Shown: positions 3,334-53,290, counted from the first letter of the stretch. The stretch: 64,000 bases of DNA from Hyphochytrium catenoides (GCA_900088475.1 FLMG01000350.1:186001-250000); one strand, 5' to 3'. Translations and numbers: made by a program. The notes: a model not told the origin generated them from the letters alone.

Positions 3334-4803
3334 CTAAAGAAGCCTAGTGGTGGTCTGCACTTCCTCAAGGGCATTATAGTAGGTGGTATTGGTATAGACA
3401 TAGTCCTGATACTCGGCAGGACAGTAAGGGAAGTTGACGCCATGGCCAGAAGAAGTAAACATCTTCACGGCGAAGTAGTAGGTGAGGTAGACTGCCAGAG
3501 AAGAACAGACGGCGACGACGAGGAGACCGAACGCTTTCTCATAAATGGGCATGGTACGCCAGAAGACCTTCAAGTAGAAGCAGATAGGAAGGATGATACA
3601 GCTGAGAGATACTCCAGAGGCACCAGCCAGATCAACGAGGTCATGGAAGTGCTCCTGCAGGAGAATGGAAAGAACCACCAGCAGTGAGATAACTACTACT
3701 CTAAAGATAGAGCACTTAAGCATGGCGCCGGGAAGGTGATATGTGTGGTACTCTTCGTGCTCATCGTTTCTATCCAGCTCTGTCATTGGAAGAAAGGATG
3801 TCTCAGATTTTCTCTTCATTACATCAGAGTGGAGGCCTTCAACCGCCAGAGGGGTGGGGGTGGCAAGGCTGTGTCCACGACCATGTGGAGGTTTGTGCAT
3901 CCCCAGAATGCCCCTTTCTCCTAGGTATAAAGCTGGATACAATATGACTGAGAAGGCAATGCTTATGTGCAGGTGCATTGAGAGGAAGGCAAGGATGATG
4001 CTACCTCTGCTTGCAGTGAAACCGAGCTTAGTGCCCTCGACAGCAAAAAGGAGATTGCCAGGAATTTGGCAGCCAACCAACACGTATCCGCTGATGGCGA
4101 TAATCATGAAGAGAATCGAGATAACAGTCATGGTCACAAACACCACACGAGGCATTCTGGAGGGGTCCTTGTGCTCTCTCTGAATAGCAGGAATGATAAT
4201 CGCGGCTCCATAGGCGAGAGAGAGGTTACCAAAGGTAGAGATGATCTGGGCGAACTTCGCATCGGGTTGAGGAGGAGTGCTTTCCATTGGAGTCAAATAG
4301 TAGATGAGAATGCCTAAGGCAATGAAATCAGCAAAGAGAGTACCTAAGCAGCCAGCAAGTGATGCCATAGCGGACTCCTTCAGGGTAGGTGTAAGAGAGA
4401 CTGGGAGCACGGTGATGGCCATGAAAATAATCCATTCGGTAGGAGAAAAGGCGCCAGGGAAGAGCGTGGTCAGAAGGGAAGATCCCAAGACCAAGAAGGC
4501 GCAAGGAATTAGTAGACAGCATGTGAGCTGCGATACGATGACAAGACCACCGCCGATTCTTCCTAGTGCCCAGAAGCCCAAATCTCCAAAGGTCTTGACA
4601 GATCTTGGTGCCGCAACCATGACCTTGCTGCAGACTACAGATGCATACACGTTGGCAGCTGCCATAAAGAGCAGAGCGATAGTTGCGTAGACAGGACCCG
4701 CGCGCGCATAGTTCCCTGGCATTCCCAGGGTTCCAATGCCATAGACGCAGCAGAAAAGGCTGAACGCCGCTTTGAAGTCTTCCCCCGTAAACCACTTCGG
4801 CAT
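3334..4803 (-). CDS. Amino acid/auxin permease (AAAP, Aa_trans family), intronless
   Basis: 489-aa multi-pass membrane ORF. The N-terminus FSLFCCVYGIGTLGMPGNYARAGP and the FGNLSLAYGAAIIIPAIQREHKDPSRMPRV segment resemble the expanded oomycete AAAP permeases. Confidence 0.92.
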   Translation of the reverse strand: MPKWFTGEDFKAAFSLFCCVYGIGTLGMPGNYARAGPVYATIALLFMAAANVYASVVCSKVMVAAPRSVKTFGDLGFWALGRIGGGLVIVSQLTCCLLIPCAFLVLGSSLLTTLFPGAFSPTEWIIFMAITVLPVSLTPTLKESAMASLAGCLGTLFADFIALGILIYYLTPMESTPPQPDAKFAQIISTFGNLSLAYGAAIIIPAIQREHKDPSRMPRVVFVTMTVISILFMIIAISGYVLVGCQIPGNLLFAVEGTKLGFTASRGSIILAFLSMHLHISIAFSVILYPALYLGERGILGMHKPPHGRGHSLATPTPLAVEGLHSDVMKRKSETSFLPMTELDRNDEHEEYHTYHLPGAMLKCSIFRVVVISLLVVLSILLQEHFHDLVDLAGASGVSLSCIILPICFYLKVFWRTMPIYEKAFGLLVVAVCSSLAVYLTYYFAVKMFTSSGHGVNFPYCPAEYQDYVYTNTTYYNALEEVQTTTRLL

Positions 4804-12926: not shown

Positions 12927-14813
12927 ATGGATGTCACCGCCCACAGCACCAGAATATTTATCGGGGAAAAGGAAGACGGGGCTGCGGGAAATGGACTTGC
13001 GGGCCTAGCGCCGCTATCTCACGGAGGACAAGGCTTACAAGGCGCTCATGAGACCCGCTTAAACCAGGGCATGGCTTTGGACACAACGGAACTGATAGAT
13101 AGTCTCAAGACAGAGCTGCAGCGTCACATATCACAAGATGACGCGGCCGCTTGGCATCACTTCCTCACCTCGCGCTCTATTCCTCCAGAGATCATTCATC
13201 AGACTCTGCAGCAATTGGATGCCTGGAGCTGTCAAAACTGCACTCGGCTTAACTCCAAAGTTGACCCCTGCTTGCATTGCGGAGAAGCGCGTGATATGCA
13301 TAGGGGGTCTATCAATGGCTCTAGCGAAGTAGAGCTACCCAGGCTTGTGGCCTCAATGCCATGTCCTTCCGGCCAGATAACGCCTGGAGGTCGCACGCTG
13401 CTGGGTTATGATGACGGAATGCAGAAGCACAAGCAGACTCCAGACGTCGCTTTTGATGTGCATCCCGAACGCCCTGACCGACTTCACGCAGCCTATGAAC
13501 ACCTTGAGCGCCTAGGACTTATCATGCAGTGTGAGGTCGTCTCTGGAAGGTCGGCATCAGAGGCTGAGCTTTCTAGAGTGCATTGCTGCGATTATCTTCA
13601 GTCTCTTAACGCTGCGTGGCAACAACCACCAGGTCGACTATGCCTGTCGCATGACACTTACAGTAGCGGCCAGGGAAGCAAGGAAGCTGCGTTGCTGGCC
13701 TGCGGGATAGCGGTGGAGGTTGTGGACAGAGTTCTTCAGGGTAGAGCAAGAAACGGGTTTGCCTTGGTCCGTCCTCCGGGCCATCACGCTGAGAAAGGAA
13801 AGGCTATGGGGTTTTGCATGCTGAATAACGTGGCGGTAGCTGCAGAACACGCCCGCCGGAAGTACAACTTGAAGAGGATTCTAATCGTTGACTGGGACGT
13901 CCATCATGGAAACGGGACCCAACACATATTCAATGACGACAGCTCAGTCCTATACTGTTCTATCCATCGATTGGACCACGGAGACTTCTTTCCTGGCTCT
14001 GGCAGACCGTGCGAGATAGGGATGGGCCAAGGCATTGGCCATACAATCAACGTGGCGTGGACTACTGCTGGTGCTGGGGATGCGGAGTATCTTCTCGCTT
14101 TTGATCAACTCCTGATGCCGGTTTTCATGGAGTATTGTCCCGAGTTGGTCCTTATCTCCGCTGGTTTTGACGCTGGGTTGGGAGATCCACTCGGGGGTTG
14201 CAGTGTGACTTCGGCAGGATTTGCACATATGGCTCATAGACTCTGCTCTCTAGCATGTGGCAAGGTGGTTGCTGTCTTGGAGGGTGGCTATAACCTTAAA
14301 GTGCTGAGTAAAGGTATAGAAGCTGTTTTAAGGACGCTTCTGGGCCATCCTCCACCCAGATTGCAGCTGTGTAATAAGCCCAGTCCGGAGGGCGTACGTG
14401 CCATCGCCAGAACTCGAAAGTTCATCAGGCCTTACTGGAAAACAATCCAAGCAGACTTCCCTCCTGCCGCTGAGGAGGCAGGTGACGTTAGCAATATCGA
14501 CGGGGCGAGAGTGGTGGTGAAACGAGGCGCATCTGGAGCAAACACATATATCTTCTATGACGTAAGAGAGAATCTTCCGCACAAGGAAAGCAACAGGCAG
14601 CAAGAGCCGACCGAACAGAGGAGTGACAGCAGTCTTGAACAGAAGGAAGGGAATGCCGATCTGGACGAGGGCCTGCCACCTCCAAGTGCAGCAGGCGAGA
14701 CGGGGGATGAGGTGCATTGGACCACGTTTCCGCCTTTAGACATTCCAATCCTGAAGCCCAAGCAACCATCTCAAGAGTTCTCCTACTCTCAGTTCTTTGG
14801 GGTCGAAGGGTGA
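12927..14813 (+). CDS. Class II histone deacetylase with an N-terminal RanBP2-type zinc finger, intronless
   Basis: HPERPDR, RPPGHHA, GFCMLNN, DWDVHHGNGTQ, SAGFDA and LEGGY motifs, plus a WSCQNCTRLN...CLHC finger upstream. Confidence 0.93.
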   Translation: MDVTAHSTRIFIGEKEDGAAGNGLAGLAPLSHGGQGLQGAHETRLNQGMALDTTELIDSLKTELQRHISQDDAAAWHHFLTSRSIPPEIIHQTLQQLDAWSCQNCTRLNSKVDPCLHCGEARDMHRGSINGSSEVELPRLVASMPCPSGQITPGGRTLLGYDDGMQKHKQTPDVAFDVHPERPDRLHAAYEHLERLGLIMQCEVVSGRSASEAELSRVHCCDYLQSLNAAWQQPPGRLCLSHDTYSSGQGSKEAALLACGIAVEVVDRVLQGRARNGFALVRPPGHHAEKGKAMGFCMLNNVAVAAEHARRKYNLKRILIVDWDVHHGNGTQHIFNDDSSVLYCSIHRLDHGDFFPGSGRPCEIGMGQGIGHTINVAWTTAGAGDAEYLLAFDQLLMPVFMEYCPELVLISAGFDAGLGDPLGGCSVTSAGFAHMAHRLCSLACGKVVAVLEGGYNLKVLSKGIEAVLRTLLGHPPPRLQLCNKPSPEGVRAIARTRKFIRPYWKTIQADFPPAAEEAGDVSNIDGARVVVKRGASGANTYIFYDVRENLPHKESNRQQEPTEQRSDSSLEQKEGNADLDEGLPPPSAAGETGDEVHWTTFPPLDIPILKPKQPSQEFSYSQFFGVEG

Positions 14814-25637: not shown

Positions 25638-26411
25638 TCACCCCAGGCTGGCGGAAGCACCTTCCAGGCCCACCCTTCTATAAACTCGCACATAATCCAA
25701 AAGGAGTTCTTGAGGGAAAACAGTTTGTCCATCGGGAGGTGGGACTGGGTTTCCCCCGACAGCAAGGTTTACAATGATATGAAAGCGTTGATCGAACATC
25801 CAAGGACATGGTCCTGCCAAGCAAGGGCCCAGATCACCCGGTGTCTTTGTGGCATAATGGATCCCATCCACGTACCATTTTATGGCTCGCTCCTCCCATT
25901 CAATGGCAAAAGAATGGAACTCATCTGCAAAGCTGCCCACGGGAAGGACAAATTCACCGCTCGACCACTTGTTATGCGGCCAAGGATCGCCGTAGTTGAT
26001 AGCTCCCTTGACTACCCGGCAGAAGTCATCCTGCCCCATCATTTCCATCACATCTATTTCCCCGCTGAGAGGCCAGCCACCGTAAACATTGTCTTCTGGC
26101 AGTAGCCAGAACGCTGGCCACATGCCTTTCCCTTGAACCAGCTTCGCGCGAAACTCGATCTTTCCATAGCAAAAGCTAAACTTTTTCGAGGTGTTAATTC
26201 GTGCGGACGTGTACTCCTTGCCCAGATACCATTCCCGGCGGGCCGTGATCACTAGATTACCGTCCTTCACTTTAACATTCTCCGGGTCGTCTCTGTAGTA
26301 CTGGAGCTCGTTGTTTCCACAGCCATCGCCACGAACCTCGACATTCCAGTAGGCTCGATTCAGTGCGTCCCCATTGAAGTCATCTTCCCAGATGAGCTCG
26401 TACGTTGACAT
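25638..26411 (-). CDS. Glycoside hydrolase family 16 beta-1,3-glucanase (laminarinase-like), intronless
   Basis: LIWEDDF, GNNELQYY, YTSARINT, WPAFWLLP, catalytic EIDVME, NLAVGG and DYVRVY motifs. No signal peptide after Met 26411. Confidence 0.93.
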   Translation of the reverse strand: MSTYELIWEDDFNGDALNRAYWNVEVRGDGCGNNELQYYRDDPENVKVKDGNLVITARREWYLGKEYTSARINTSKKFSFCYGKIEFRAKLVQGKGMWPAFWLLPEDNVYGGWPLSGEIDVMEMMGQDDFCRVVKGAINYGDPWPHNKWSSGEFVLPVGSFADEFHSFAIEWEERAIKWYVDGIHYATKTPGDLGPCLAGPCPWMFDQRFHIIVNLAVGGNPVPPPDGQTVFPQELLLDYVRVYRRVGLEGASASLG

Positions 26412-26841
26412 CAGAGAAACTGATTCCCTACAAATCTTCTTGCATCACACGTCGGTTTTCTTCACTAGTATTCAGCTCATCGGTCTTTCAAAGGTCAAAC
26501 TGGAGCCAACAAGCTGCTGGGCAGAGCTCAGGCAAGATGAAGCAAGCACGAACCTCGTAGATCGGTCACTGATGAGAAGTCCAATGAGAATCTTCAGAAA
26601 GATTTGGTTCTTTCTCTGTAAGGTGGGAGGGGAGAGGGGTTTCCTCCCTTTGATGCCGAAGCTATCAAAAAGGTACGAGAATATCGTTGCACCATTAGCA
26701 TTCCGTCCCTGCACTACGAGTGAGGTATTACCCGAAAGTAACGTCTTCATAGCTTTAACACCCAGAATAGAACACATCCTTGCCTCTGCCATTTAGAAAT
26801 ATGTTTTATAAAAAGCCTCTTTGGGCATTTGCACATCTGTG

Positions 26842-28725
26842 ATGGCGGATCGCTTCCATGCACCAAGAAGACGCAAGCTTGGACGCAAGCACAGTTGCAG
26901 GCAAGCGGCAAAGAGCAACAGTACAGTCGATGATATAATACGGGACCTCGCTCCGCCCGTGAACGGTTTGGAGATCATGTCATCATGGCGGCATGCTCTG
27001 GGCTTGCTCAAAAAGAAGGCGACGGGCAGGAATATCTCAGGAGTCATCCTAGACTTAGACATCCTTCGAAGCTGCCAGGTTATGGAAAGATGTTGAGACA
27101 ACATTACCCGCCAGCAGAACTCATAATTTTCTATTCCCTAGCCTATTATCCGCGCGTCAAGTGAAGGTGACAACACTGGTCGACCAAGCTACGCTACCCA
27201 GCTAAATAAGTAGGAAGTGACATCAACTAAGGCTGCTGCCTTCCTTGGTCCCTTAAAGGTGCACTGATTTCCCTCCTCACCCTGTAGGTTTGGATACAGA
27301 GTTGGGGCGCTCGGCTCGCCAGAAGAGGTAAACGACATCTAGACTCTCCACCATTTGAGGCCGCAATGCTCACCTAATGGGGTGTCAGGCCAACAGCTGG
27401 CGTCATGAGTTCAATGAAGTGATCGTCGTAGAGTCAGATAACGTTAAGGTAAGGTTCAGAGGTCATTTTTCGAGAATTATTTGTACTAATCTTTGTCGCG
27501 TGACTAGCTTGAAGCTTCGTTGTACAGGAGCCTAGCGGAACGGCTCTCAGTCCCGCTGTCCCAAGTTCTTATTATCCTAGACGAATCCCTGCAGGATGAT
27601 AGCGGTAAGGCAAACCTGATCATTCGCAAGGGATGAGAGGAACTATTAGCGTTTACAATACTTGGTCGCGCAGGAGGACGGTACCAGGATTTGATCTGCA
27701 ATCACCTGGGTGCCACTTTGGCGTGGCTTCCCGGTGTCGATCTAGATAAGCAGACTATCAGTCAAGAAGACGGTAGGCCTACGACATGTTGACTCTGCGA
27801 GTGCAAGTTGGCCTGCTTGCTGACCTTAGCTCAATCTTTACCCGGCTTCACAGGTCCAGTTCCAGATGATATTGCTGACAGTAAGGAGAGTGCTATTCAT
27901 CACGGAAAACAAGTGCCACTGTCTGCTAAACTCTCGTCTTAGCTATCATAGGGCTTGAAGGCCATAGCAACCCTATGGTCTTGCGCTTTGGGCCCCATCG
28001 TATCCGAAGCTCTGAGGTGTTCTTAGAGACCAAGTATTGCCTTGGGCTGGTCAACTTAAAACCAATAGCACCCGGTAACCCTTTTTCCCTCAGACCGCCT
28101 TACACCCTCCAAGCCGCAGTGACATGTGTTGAGTATAGGACATGTCCTGATTGTTTCCAGACGCTTGGTTCGAAGGTTTGCAGACTTACATTCTTCTGAA
28201 GTGGAGGAAATGTGGAGACTAGCACATGTAATGATGGAGATTTGTTGCTGCTACCCCACGCAAGCGTATCTGTTACGCTCTTTCTGACTTCTAGCTCTAC
28301 AATAGAAAGTGGGCGCTGTCATTGAGAAGCATTACAAGGCCCAATCTTTGACCTTCGCCATTCAGGTATGGATTCTCTCCTCTATCGGTGCTCTGTACAC
28401 TATGCTAGACTGAACTTACATGCAATGTAGGATGGCCCCGCCGCTGGCCAGACTGTCCCTCACGTCCACATTCATATTGTACCAAGAAAGATTGGCGACT
28501 TCGAAGATAACGATCAGGTCTACGAAGAGGTGGGTTAATCCCTTTAACACAGTTGACTAATAGGGCTAGACCTGATTCCTCCTAGCACAGATTGACAAGA
28601 CTGACTTTACGGAGAAACCGCCTACGAAAGGTCTGGACGCCCCGCAAGAGAGGCGAGCAAGGTCTCTCGAGGAGATGAGCGCGGAGGCAACGATTCTCCG
28701 CCAATTGTTTGCCCCACCCGCATAG
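26842..28725 (+). CDS. FHIT: HAD-like domain fused to FHIT (bis(5'-adenosyl)-triphosphatase, HIT family), about 12 exons
   Basis: The FHIT part is clear ([58 protein letters not shown]). Seven upstream exons splice in frame into it and carry HAD-like motifs. Confidence in FHIT alone is about 0.95; the score reflects the fusion. Confidence 0.75.
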
Positions 28726-29475
28726 TAATGATATAACGCGTGCTAGAGGAGAGTTCACTTGTAGCCAAGGCGGGGAAAGGCGAAAGAGAGTGTTTTTGAC
28801 TCGACCTCGAGCGTCCGCTGGAACCNNNNNNNNNNNNNNNNNNNNNNNCCTCCCCTCGAACTCATCGCATCTGGTCCGGGCTGTGTCGCTCGCTTCAGCC
28901 CTCACTTCTTAGACGTTCACAGAAAACCTTTAACAAGTCTAAACCACTGGGGTAACGCTGACTGTATTCCAGTAGTTCAGAGATGAGAAGAAAGCTACAA
29001 ACATCGGCTCAATCTTCAAGCTCTCGAGGCTGTACCTGGAGCAAGACCGTCCGCACCTTGCTAGTGAGAAGTACAGAAATAATGACACATTGTTCCTTGA
29101 AGTCCATACATAGAACTAAGGAAGAGCTGTTGCGCCTTTGCTTCTTCTGATCACATCATCATCACAATCATCAGCAAAATCCAGTCTGCTTTGTCTAGCT
29201 CCTGGGGGTCATGTGGGGCAGGGGCTTGTCCCTTGGGTTATTTATTGCTTGGGCTGTTTGGTGGTGGTATCCATAAGAAAATGTCTATGATGAGAACCAC
29301 AGGACTCCCCAGCCTCTCGATCCTCTGATGCTACTGAGTGTCACCAGGTCTGCCTTCCTCCGCGGTTTGGCGCCTCATTGCTCATCTGGATTGGTAGTTG
29401 CCAGGCCACTGCAGGAGCGTGTTAGCTGGACAAACAAGAGTGCTAGACCTACTTGGAGCCGAGAGTAGACGCGAG

Positions 29476-32400
29476 ATGGCTACTGAAGGCGCTGATGCCT
29501 TGACCCAAAGGATTATCGCCAAGGGCGATGACGTGCGACAGCTGAAGACGGCGAAAGCTGACAAAGCGGCCGTTGATGCAGCAGTTGCCGAGCTGCTCAG
29601 TCTTAAGAATGAGTATAAGCAGTTGACTGGGCAGGTACGACAGGAGCTATGGTGTCAGTTATTGTGCCAAAGAGCAAGGGCTATAATCTTGTTCTTCTTT
29701 GGCCACTAGGATTACCAAGCTCCAGGTGCCCCTAAGAAAGAGAAGAAGAAGGATGGGAAGCCGAAGGAGCCCAAGGACCCCAATGAGAAAAGCAAAAAGC
29801 AGCTGAAGAAGGAGGCAAAGAAGGCCGAGAAAGCAGACAAGAAGAAGGAAGCCCATGGAGAAGCTGGTCCATCTTCTTCCCCAGGTATTCCATTTGACGG
29901 TAGCCTACTCTCCTTGCAACCTCTGTCATATAACCCCTATGGTTGCTAGGCTCTCCCAATAAAACCCCTACGGAGAATGCAGCAAAAGCTTCTGCCAAAA
30001 AGGGAGCAGAGAAGCCCTCTGCAGCCGCAGCCAGCGCACAGGAGCCCCTTAAGGCTATTGCTTCACAGGCAAGTCTGCTTGAGATATGCTTGGCATCCTC
30101 AATCTTCTTTCAGCATGCGCTCTATCTAATTTTCTCCCCTCTTTCCATGCATTTACCCATTGGCACCTCTTCCCCAAAAGATACCGGCACCAGAGAGCTC
30201 GCCCGAAATACGCTTCACAGCAGACAATCTGCCCCTGGCCACTTTTATAGTTGGAGCGTTATCGGATCCCAACAAGGGCACATCCTGCTTCCGCCTTATC
30301 CCAGGTCATAAGGTCATTGCGGAAATGGCTTTCCCAAGCGGGTAAGTGGATTGTGCTGGCGTTAGCCTCATAGTGCTCTTGTTGCTTGTTAAGGGTTGTG
30401 ATAGAGATTCCGCTGACGGATGTGCAACACAGGGAGATTATCCGCGGTGATGCCAACATTGCCCGCTATCTGGCCATGCAGTGCAAGGACTTAGGGCTCT
30501 ATGGGCACGACGCTCTGTCTACAAGTGTCATTGAGCAATGGTTGGACTTTGGGGCCACTTACTTGAAGGGGTAAGTAGATGTCGGGAAGTGAGGCTCTAT
30601 CTCTAACCTTATCCTGGTCCTCGCACTTGTGGCACCAATTGTGCCCACACTACCATTATTTGAACATCTGGCGACTCAAAGACTCCAGTTTGCTGATGTT
30701 TGACCCTCCTTCAGCACTATTCGGGATGGTGTCGTGAGCTATCTAGACCAAGTTCTTCTTCATAAAACCTTTTTGGTGGGCTACTCAACGACTCTTGCAG
30801 ACATAGCTGTCTGGAGCTATCTCACGAGTAAGTTGGCCTATATTCCAAAAAACCCTTCTCTTTAGAGACAAGCTCCCACCACAACTCTAAGCCACGCGAC
30901 TTACCATTTACTTTGCTAACAGAGAAAGGTTTCAAGACCGACGACAAGTATCCTCATCTAGGGCGATGGTTAAGGCTGTTCAACTCCATATCTCCTTTTT
31001 CAGACGCCTCGGAGGCCTTATCTTCCTTGGTAGAGTTATTCCTTCCACCGTTAGCGTCCTTCTGACTTGCTAAGGTATTGCTCCTCTTTTGCACAGGTCC
31101 AGGCGATGCAACCTACGAAGGAGTCTTCCAGGGTAGGGGGAAGTAAGCCCACGCAAGAGGGAGCAAACGGCGGGAGCCAAAAGGGCAAAACCACAGGGAA
31201 CTGCCCGCCCCTACCAGGAGCGGTCGAAGGAAAAGTCTGCACTAGGTTTCCCCCTGAGCCAAGTGGATACCTGCACATTGGTCATATCAAGGCGGCAATG
31301 TTGAACAACTACTATGCCCGTCTGTACAAAGGGAAGCTCCGACTTAGATTTGATGATACGAACCCGAGGTCAGGACTTGATTCACATCTCAATAAGGTGT
31401 ACTGTGGTGCCTGTGAGTTGTTAAGTTGGCCGCCAACATTTTGGCTCGTACTCTTTGGAAGAATCATGGTCCTCCTGGTTGAGCCACTCAGCTCCTGCTG
31501 CCGCTTGGGTGTTCCTTATGCCGTCAGTTGGATACTTCTGCTTTCTATGAGCTGTGGACTCAGGTCGTGTCGTGTTAATGTAGCAAGGAGAAGATGGAGT
31601 TTGAACAATCCATCATTGAGGATTTGAAGAGGATGAACATTGTTCCCGACGAAGTAACCTACACCTCGGACTATTTTCCTCAAATGAAGGACTACGCTAT
31701 CAAGATGATCAAGTCTCATAAGGCTTATATGGATGACACTCCCGTGGAGAAAATGAGGTAGGAGTTAGCCTTGTTGGCCCTGAGCCACTTTGCCAGCTTA
31801 TTTAGGAGGCCCTTTTGATTCTCTTTAGGGAAGAGCGCATGGATGGCATAGAGTCTGCTCGCAGGACAACCTCGACAGAGGAGAATTTGAAGATTTTCGA
31901 AGAGCTCTGCAAGGGTAATCCAGACTACATAAAGTACTGCCTCAGAGCGAAAATTGACATGCAAGCAAAGAACAAGACGCTTAGGGACCCAGTCCTATAC
32001 CGTTTCAATGACACGCCACATCACCGCCACGGCACCAAATACAAAGCCTATCCTACCTATGATTTTGCATGCCCTATCGTGGATAGCCTCGAAGGCGTCA
32101 CACATGCACTGAGAACTACTGAGTACAATGATCGGTACGCCCTGGATGACGCCAACTTCTATCTCTTGTGGGGTTGACGGATTCTTTAGCAATCTATCTA
32201 TCTCGCGCCTGCTTGATCGACGACAGCCTCTATCTTTGTCCTGCCGTTTGCTGACTTCATCTCCCGGGTGCAGGGATGCGCAGTATCAGTGGGTCATTGA
32301 AGCTCTTGGCATTCGCCCTGTACAAATTGTGGCGTTCGCCCGTCTCAATTTCGTGCACACAGTACTATCGAAGCGCAAGTTGACCTGGTTTGTGGAAAAT

Positions 32401-38151: not shown

Positions 38152-39860
38152 AAAGTCGATAGTGACATACTGGTCAAGGCGGCAGAACTCTCCGAACGTC
38201 CGAAAGATGGTCCAGCTGTGACAGAATTCCGGTTTCTCATCACTCATAGAACGTAGCTTCCCAGGAGCAGGATCCAACTTATGGCTCAGCCAAAGGGTGC
38301 ATGCTATCTCGTACTCCTAAGAAGCAAGCCATACGCCTCCATTGAGAGCTAAAAGAGATGCGGAAAGAAATGGAGAAGAGCTGTACCGGTGTCTTAGCCA
38401 GCGAATCGAGCCGATGGCCCACCACCGTCGCCACAAGAACTGGATGAGCGCTGCTACCATCAACAGTCTTCACAGCCAGTCCGCCTGATACGAAATTGAA
38501 TACTCAGCCAACGGTGCGCAGAGCCTCTCTAACAATATGTCGCCTGGTAGCCTGATATCACCTGCTGTACTAATCTCCTTGAGGTCTTGACCCTTCAACT
38601 CTATTGCCGACTTGATGACAGACACCCATTTTCTAAGGTACCGTTCACTGTCTACGTTTCACAAGCANNNNNNNNNNNNNNNNNNNNNNNNNNNGTGCAT
38701 GATGAATGGGCTGTCATGGACGGGCTCAATCATGTAAGAATGACACTTCCTCACCTCCCGATTTTGTCCATCAATGACGCGGAAGACGTAACGCCTTCTG
38801 TCTGCGGCCGTCTCTGGACCTCCGGTGAGTAAACTGCCAATCTCAACACCAGATGCAACCTCTCCACCTTTCAGAGAGATAATTTTGCGCCGATCGTAGA
38901 GGGAGTCATCCTGCTCAGGAGCATTCTTGAGCAAGCGATCCATTTGGAGAGGAGTCTGACAGACGTACCTTATAGATTTGTAGTTCATGACTGTGAGGAC
39001 GCAGGTAGACAAATTTTCGCTCCCAGTTCTTAGACTTTTCATCCTCTAGGAGGAGCCATCCGCTGAACTCCTCCATGGCTGAAACTTCTATAGACTATCA
39101 CCATCGCCATTTCAGAGCTACTTGTACCACCATTTATCCCCGTTAGACAGCTGTCATAAAGTCGCTGTCCTTCCAGAACTTGGCTCCCACGCCAAGTGAG
39201 CTGCCAAGAACGTTGACACCTGACAGCAGTTGACGGCACAGATGGCAAGCAGATGAGCTATCACCTGCAGCAAGGGAGTCTCAGTACTTCCTACGTCCTC
39301 GAGCCAGTACAAGTTCCCCCGCAGGACGGACGCTGTCCCCAGCTTTGCTATTTATTACCCGGTCTCTCGATCTCCAGCTATTCTGCTGCTGTCAAGTCGC
39401 TGTGTCTGCGGGAATGTCATCAACAGATCAGAATCTCTCTGTCTTCTGCCCTGTTCCCCCTTTCAGATCTCTTCACCCTCAACATACATGTCTCCTGGAG
39501 GACGCCTGGGGCTGTAATGGATGATAAGAGTAGATGGAAGATCGTGAGGTTGGCTCTTCGCTCCTTGGCACACTCTATAGTTCTATGGAGTATTTGAAGT
39601 CGGATGCCACACTCAAACGACTTCCCCTGGCTGTCTACTACTGGTCGGCCTCTCTCCTTAGGGACTGCATAGCATTAAGTGGGTTATCAACGAGGCATCA
39701 GAGGCTGATCATGTGGCAACGCGGACCAGCTTAGGCCTCGGTCGGCTGTAAGGCATGCGCGACTTACGGAGGTGTGACTAGATGTGAGCTACTCTCGTGT
39801 GGTTACCAGAGCATAGCACATATGCGTCAAAGTGCTATCAACAAAATCCTCACTATCCGG

Positions 39861-53231: not shown

Positions 53232-53290
53232 TCTCTCTCTCTCTCTCTCTCNNNNNNNNNNNNNNNNNNNNNNNNNNNNNNNNNNNNNNN
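53232..53290. repeat. (CT)n microsatellite running into an assembly gap
   Basis: CT run followed by Ns. Confidence 0.9.

Follow-up and report, generated by a model that had tools for sequence, protein, structure and literature searches.

FHIT is a conserved, tumor-suppressor-linked hydrolase of Ap3A and cap-like dinucleotides whose cellular role is still debated. To our knowledge, NitFhit is the only natural FHIT fusion, and much of the research on FHIT partners has taken its lead from it. Two further groups of proteins serve here for comparison, the capless (C0) HAD phosphatases (e.g. GmhB, the PNKP phosphatase domain and MDP-1) and the cytosolic 5'-nucleotidase IIIB (NT5C3B), an m7GMP phosphatase whose cap domain is large and whose HAD motifs are clear. 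NitFhit, which is found in C. elegans and D. melanogaster (PDB 1ems), is the textbook example of a 'Rosetta stone' fusion (PMC9913352, PMC4860965). The FHIT locus described here is located in a 64,000-nt stretch of the Hyphochytrium catenoides genome (the window) and resembles NitFhit in that a complete FHIT domain would be placed C-terminally, behind an unrelated N-terminal alpha/beta domain. It differs in the partner, which is a nitrilase in NitFhit and here a 164-aa orphan domain without a detectable family, and in that the fusion is deduced from the genome alone. A text search of the literature retrieved no paper that links FHIT with a HAD fusion. The original prediction for this locus was a fusion gene of a HAD phosphatase and FHIT. 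Its coding exons and their in-frame connection to FHIT were recovered and probably belong to one gene, while the HAD identity did not gain statistical support. The locus is viewed as a plausible lead and not as a result: it offers a well-founded gene model and an orphan N-terminal domain, together with a putative fusion and a putative family assignment.

The proposed gene is encoded on the plus strand and would comprise approximately 12 coding exons, whose translation from an ATG at position 26977 would yield about 332 aa. The predicted chain starts with the 164-aa N-terminal domain (N-domain), continues with a linker rich in Pro, Asp and Gly and ends with a complete canonical FHIT domain. All 11 introns of the combined model of upstream and FHIT exons have a length of 59-81 nt. 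The FHIT part is distributed over five exons, the first of which (exon A, 27952-28074) contains the linker codons followed by the beginning of FHIT. In a PDB search, query residues 13-44 of this exon aligned with residues 2-33 of human FHIT (E=4.5e-4). This places Met 27975 at residue 1 of the human protein, i.e. at the canonical FHIT start, and the 11 codons ahead of this Met show no FHIT similarity. Exon B (28139-28227) has AG and GT flanks and a continuous frame, exon C (28306-28365) was placed in the re-derived gene model, exon D (28431-28529) encodes the histidine triad HVHIHIV and exon E (28591-28725) terminates with a TAG stop codon at 28723-28725. The 33 aa of exon D alone matched the Pfam HIT family (E=2.8e-6), and in the PDB its best match was human FHIT (E=5.3e-12), along with other Ap3A hydrolases and, at E=1.4e-9, the structure 1ems of NitFhit. 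Hint-type HIT proteins matched it at just 1e-4 or weaker, which puts the domain nearer to the FHIT branch than to Hint or GalT. Read from the ATG at 27975, the five exons encode 160 aa without stops. The domain is canonical and complete from its N- to its C-terminus, with an intact histidine triad. In this respect, and in its length of about 160 aa and the position of its Met, it is comparable to stand-alone FHIT/Aph1/Hnt2 proteins (bis(5'-adenosyl)-triphosphatases); unlike in these proteins, the frame is open upstream of the Met, and a consensus intron would join seven more coding exons to it in frame. An assembly gap of 23 Ns (28826-28848) is found 100 nt past the FHIT stop, and the 3' UTR/poly(A) region is not fully readable; further gaps of the assembly are located at 38668-38694 and 53252-53290.

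The seven exons predicted upstream of FHIT, linked by GT-AG introns in matching phases, were reproduced in our analysis: each is preceded by AG and followed by GT, the phases are compatible and 209 codons can be read without a stop. Exon 1 had been predicted to start at 26842. Its first 45 codons (26842-26976) are probably 5' UTR and not coding, and the remainder from the likely start codon (26977-27078) encodes at its 3' end a hydrophobic strand followed by Asp-x-Asp (VILDLD). The donor of exon 1 is the weak GTTATG. Exon 2 (27142-27209), which covers a Gly/Pro-rich loop leading into the helix YATQLNK, and exon 3 (27288-27327), which encodes 13 residues, both have fitting flanks and phases and scored highest for codon usage when read in the proposed frame. 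The intron ahead of exon 3 combines a GTAGG donor with a CTGAT branch motif. Phase and codon score are also suitable for exon 4 (27389-27448, including a stretch of 11 residues), which is followed by a GTAAGG donor. Exon 5 (27508-27604) encodes a helix and the strand VLIILDES, exon 6 (27674-27772) a helix, the strand ATLAWL and the start of the linker. Exon 7 (27854-27880) contributes the Pro/Asp-rich part of the linker within 27 nt; as this length is a multiple of three, skipping of the exon would also preserve the frame.

The original prediction had relied on the absence of stops. A dynamic-programming search was used to determine the longest stop-free GT..AG path (introns of 55-85 nt, up to seven introns, 1039 nt of sequence). 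The path found in the real sequence had a length of 655 nt, compared to 572±108 nt (maximum 737 nt) in dinucleotide shuffles. By the prediction's own criterion, the real path does not exceed what chance can produce. This outcome would suit the view that the upstream exons are spliced but untranslated, either as 5'-UTR exons of FHIT or as parts of a non-coding transcript; the open frame would then be a by-product of the choice of GT..AG pairs. The splice signals provide independent evidence, as the stop-free criterion does not select for them. GTAAG donors are present in three of the seven upstream introns, compared to 2% of the GT..AG pairs across the window (P=2.5e-4), GTRNG donors in five of them (P=3e-4), and a CTRAY branch motif is located at -40 to -8 from the acceptor in four, against a background of 8.8% (P=1.7e-3). 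Coding potential was assessed with a codon model that disregards stop codons and had nine long ORFs from the window as its training set. The exons from ATG 26977 onward reached a log-odds score of +9.4, a value obtained for only 1 in 5000 samples of non-coding frames (-15.0±6.6; z=3.7). Coding frames scored +14.8±6.2 and FHIT itself +15.0. In addition, every one of the seven upstream exons scored highest in the proposed frame. Such coding-type codon usage would not be expected of untranslated exons.

Allele differences supplied a further line of evidence. DNA run X1 revealed two haplotypes over positions 26700-28800, which are present at near-equal depth (approximately 185 each), diverge by about 2% and differ in small indels. 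What was sequenced, the organism or its culture, is either a heterozygous diploid or contains two genomes, and the window represents one haplotype. The exons from 26977 on contain ten allele differences, six of which are synonymous (25-31% expected, P=0.02-0.05). These include all four differences in exons 5 and 6, at 27546, 27577 and 27588 in exon 5 and at 27762 in exon 6; the difference at 27863 in exon 7 is non-synonymous. Exon 6 also contains a +1/-1 indel pair at 27747/27753 that preserves the frame and changes KQ to KA. For comparison, exon E of FHIT has three synonymous and three non-synonymous differences. The share of synonymous changes and the compensated indel argue against untranslated exons. 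The SNP density fits untranslated exons better, as it is about equal in the N-domain exons (2.0%) and the introns (2.3%), and indicates that constraint on the N-domain is modest; likewise, pieces of the N-domain yielded no homolog and no family match. Taken together, splice signals, codon usage and allele differences show that the upstream exons are real coding exons. A multi-exon coding region is therefore present directly upstream of FHIT, and untranslated exons are considered quite improbable.

The haplotypes were also informative for the translation start. Just 5' of ATG 26977, a hypervariable patch (26892-26959) displays about three times the diversity of introns within 70 nt; it holds ten substitutions as well as a net +1 indel, located within 26941-26959. 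In the rebuilt second allele, the ORF from ATG 26842 is out of frame after codon 34, and two stops immediately 5' of 26977 close the frame that encodes the domain. Because of these stops, ATG 26977 is the first usable ATG in the second allele. The segment 26842-26976 has a codon log-odds score of -4.4, which is typical of non-coding sequence, whereas ATG 26977 is in frame, is shared by both haplotypes and has an A at position -3. The start is thus more likely at ATG 26977 than at ATG 26842, where it had been placed, probably wrongly, and the basic, NLS-like N-terminus of the earlier gene model is probably untranslated.

The connection of this coding region to FHIT depends on intron 7 (27881-27951), which begins with a GTAAGG donor, contains a branch-like CTAAA at 27926-27930 and has acceptors after 27942 and 27951. 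The predicted in-frame splice via either acceptor holds for the reading frame: the FHIT frame continues if the end of exon 7 (27880) is joined to 27943 or to 27952. By itself, such a join is approximately a 1-in-5 coincidence (a one-third chance for the phase, multiplied by the chance of roughly 10 stop-free codons), and in the upstream direction the FHIT frame is not open beyond 27930. If intron 7 were not spliced, the upstream frame would run on for 20 more codons to a TAG at 27940-27942, which lies 32 nt before the FHIT ATG. Two tightly packed or overlapping genes might then be present, a gene for an orphan protein of about 185 aa (from ATG 26977 to this TAG) and a stand-alone FHIT gene translated from ATG 27975. 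The transcription start of FHIT would fall within the 3' end of the orphan gene, and the GTAAGG..AG element could be an intron in the 5' UTR of FHIT. Besides the available in-frame stop and the modest coincidence of the in-frame link, two genes would account for the start of FHIT: Met 27975 is the exact canonical start, as expected of a stand-alone protein, and this is counted against a fusion, as is the lack of FHIT similarity in the codons that precede it. No fused homolog was detected either, in a search of exon 1 against 1.84 billion representatives and in two metagenome scans. Of the sequencing runs retrieved, namely three DNA runs of the organism, a soil metagenome and three very small runs of the same species, the last three contained no reads from this locus.

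Other features of the junction speak for splicing. Intron 7 has the best donor type of the locus, and with a length of 62 or 71 nt it is within the range of the other ten introns (59-81 nt). Its 3' end is pyrimidine-rich and offers two YAG acceptors; against splicing, a strict CTRAY branch motif is missing. NitFhit also sets a precedent for a FHIT domain at the C-terminus of a fused chain. A strong donor located exactly 27 nt into what would be the last exon of a separate gene, followed by two suitable acceptors, argues against two genes. The same applies to the allele differences at 27890 and 27896 in the read-through tail, which are both radical (Ser to Ile and Ile to Ser), a pattern that an intron would explain. 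The spacing of genes is also relevant. On the 5' side, the ATG of the neighboring gene at 26411 is about 430-565 nt away from the studied gene, and on the 3' side, about 750 nt separate the FHIT stop at 28725 from the next ORF at 29476. The 32 nt between stop and ATG are far tighter (more than 10-fold) and leave no room for a 3' UTR or a promoter, so that one transcription unit is likely. If the two genes were nevertheless separate, the locus would merely represent an unusually tight gene pair in which FHIT lies beside an orphan gene. We consider this arrangement rather unlikely. That the upstream exons and FHIT are spliced in frame as one gene with a fused product is given an even to slightly better than even chance on the indirect evidence of splice signals and codon usage, of differences between the alleles and of the 32-nt spacing to the FHIT ATG. 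With intron 7 removed, both domains would reside in one polypeptide chain.

The 164-aa N-domain appears to be lineage-restricted. By eye, its predicted hydrophobic strands alternate with amphipathic helices in a Rossmann-like alpha/beta pattern, and candidates for all four HAD motifs can be assigned. The motif I candidate VILDLDIL contains both Asp residues and has a Leu at the site of the expected Thr/Val; in one haplotype, the preceding Ile is also replaced by Leu. Motifs II to IV may be represented by a Ser (…GALGS), a Lys (…DNVK) and Asp/Glu (…IILDES..DD). The candidate elements follow the order of the capless HAD phosphatases, namely a hydrophobic strand with Asp-x-Asp, then a short loop, a further strand with Ser at its end, the Lys and, 25 residues further on, a strand with Asp. 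The spacing from Lys to Asp is identical to that of E. coli Gph and GmhB. In contrast to the capless enzymes, the N-domain lacks a Thr/Val behind its Asp-x-Asp and contains neither Lys-Pro nor Gly-Asp. The motifs had been described as divergent, with neither DxDxT nor KP, and the Leu at the Thr/Val site and the missing Lys-Pro agree with this description. As the only positive sign, HMMER aligned the stretch of motifs III and IV in register with E. coli Gph, Asp on Asp, at a non-significant -0.4 bits. In a control, 91 of 2000 shuffles aligned as well, and the Smith-Waterman z-score was 0.6.

Searches for a family were negative throughout. Each exon and the junction pieces of 52, 57 and 66 aa were compared to Pfam (pieces of 20-66 aa, E≤10) and matched no HAD or receiver family, a 64-aa piece matched no HAD model of NCBIfam/TIGRFAM (E≤10), and a PDB sequence search with exon and junction pieces gave no HAD match. 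For the whole 164-aa domain, no match was reported by an HMM of the GmhB family (--max), which was built from near-identical enterobacterial sequences and is too narrow for a superfamily profile, and none of the comparisons with E. coli Gph, GmhB, CheY and the CheB receiver was significant in 1000-2000 shuffles. Among the 1.84 billion representatives, exon 1 retrieved four multi-repeat noise matches and no relative, and metagenome contigs scanned with exon 1 and with the ORF of FHIT exon A did not contain a relative. The missing homologs carry little weight, as the protein database holds no close relative of the organism and the domain is fast-evolving. Several candidates were discarded. SspB, BRF2-like, DUF2279 and thermosome were weak noise matches of Pfam, NCBIfam and PDB pieces, and an assignment of exon 5 as a helix-turn-helix element came from ESM Atlas clusters with a score of 0.44, which is noise. 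A resemblance to MDP-1 was dropped since no PDB chain of that kind matched.

The predicted HAD phosphatase identity of the upstream region thus found no statistical backing in the Pfam, NCBIfam and PDB pieces or in the local HMM tests. Acidic residues at strand ends with similar spacing are common to HAD and receiver domains, and the N-domain might instead be another Rossmann-like domain, e.g. a degenerate CheY-type, receiver-like regulatory domain. A stretch of GY-x-V…SPEEA together with a strand ending in acidic residues provides a likeness to receivers, seen only by eye, but the 57-aa piece that bears this stretch had no match to Pfam Response_reg, and CheY and the CheB receiver domain scored below the shuffle mean. 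Directly after the first (Asp-x-Asp) strand, the N-domain has an insert of 16 residues rich in Gly and Pro. By eye, this insert suits the flap of HAD proteins, or a capless HAD, better than helix 1 of a receiver. A receiver-like domain is deemed improbable. A HAD-like fold is conceivable but somewhat doubtful, and an active phosphatase appears unlikely.

In the proposed mechanism, the N-domain would bind or dephosphorylate a nucleotide that is a product or substrate of FHIT, which is the weakest step; equally, the domain may have a regulatory role or be a pseudo-enzyme. The reading as a whole, i.e. one gene encoding N-domain, linker and FHIT, with the N-domain acting on the FHIT nucleotide, is regarded as evenly balanced. 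If the N-domain dephosphorylated the NMP or m7GMP released by FHIT, NT5C3B would be its functional analog; similarity between the two was not detected. The more specific proposal of a capless HAD-type phosphatase fused to FHIT, in which cleavage of Ap3A or cap-like dinucleotides would be followed by dephosphorylation of the mononucleotide in one chain, has a low probability in our estimate. If true, it would represent a second FHIT 'Rosetta stone' after NitFhit and suggest a nucleotidase as functional partner of FHIT in other eukaryotes. A second, different fusion partner would hint at the pathway of FHIT, and a phosphatase partner would point to the disposal of nucleotides or cap fragments. 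A confirmed fusion would add a new partner within a known kind of fusion.

The window contains additional genes in the neighborhood of this locus. Divergent to the studied gene, an intron-free ORF of 257 aa on the minus strand (25638-26411) encodes a glycoside hydrolase family 16/SKN1-KRE6 beta-glucan domain (Pfam E=4.8e-20). No signal peptide is found at its ATG, and an upstream exon may therefore be missing. Approximately 750 nt past the FHIT stop, a WHEP-TRS domain is encoded on the plus strand (29476-29706, Pfam E=9.5e-18), which is probably exon 1 of an aminoacyl-tRNA synthetase. A single-exon ORF of 628 aa (12927-14813, plus strand) encodes a histone deacetylase domain of class II (Pfam E=3.7e-97). 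Animal HDAC6 proteins are its top database hits, with just 42-48% identity, and this search was uninformative as to the taxon. A fungal origin, first suspected from the CTRAY-type introns, was rejected in view of an intron-free ORF on the minus strand (3334-4803), which encodes an amino acid/auxin permease (Aa_trans). The permease has its nearest matches in oomycetes (48-56% identity). As the original prediction had presumed, the genome thus belongs to the stramenopiles, near but outside the oomycetes.
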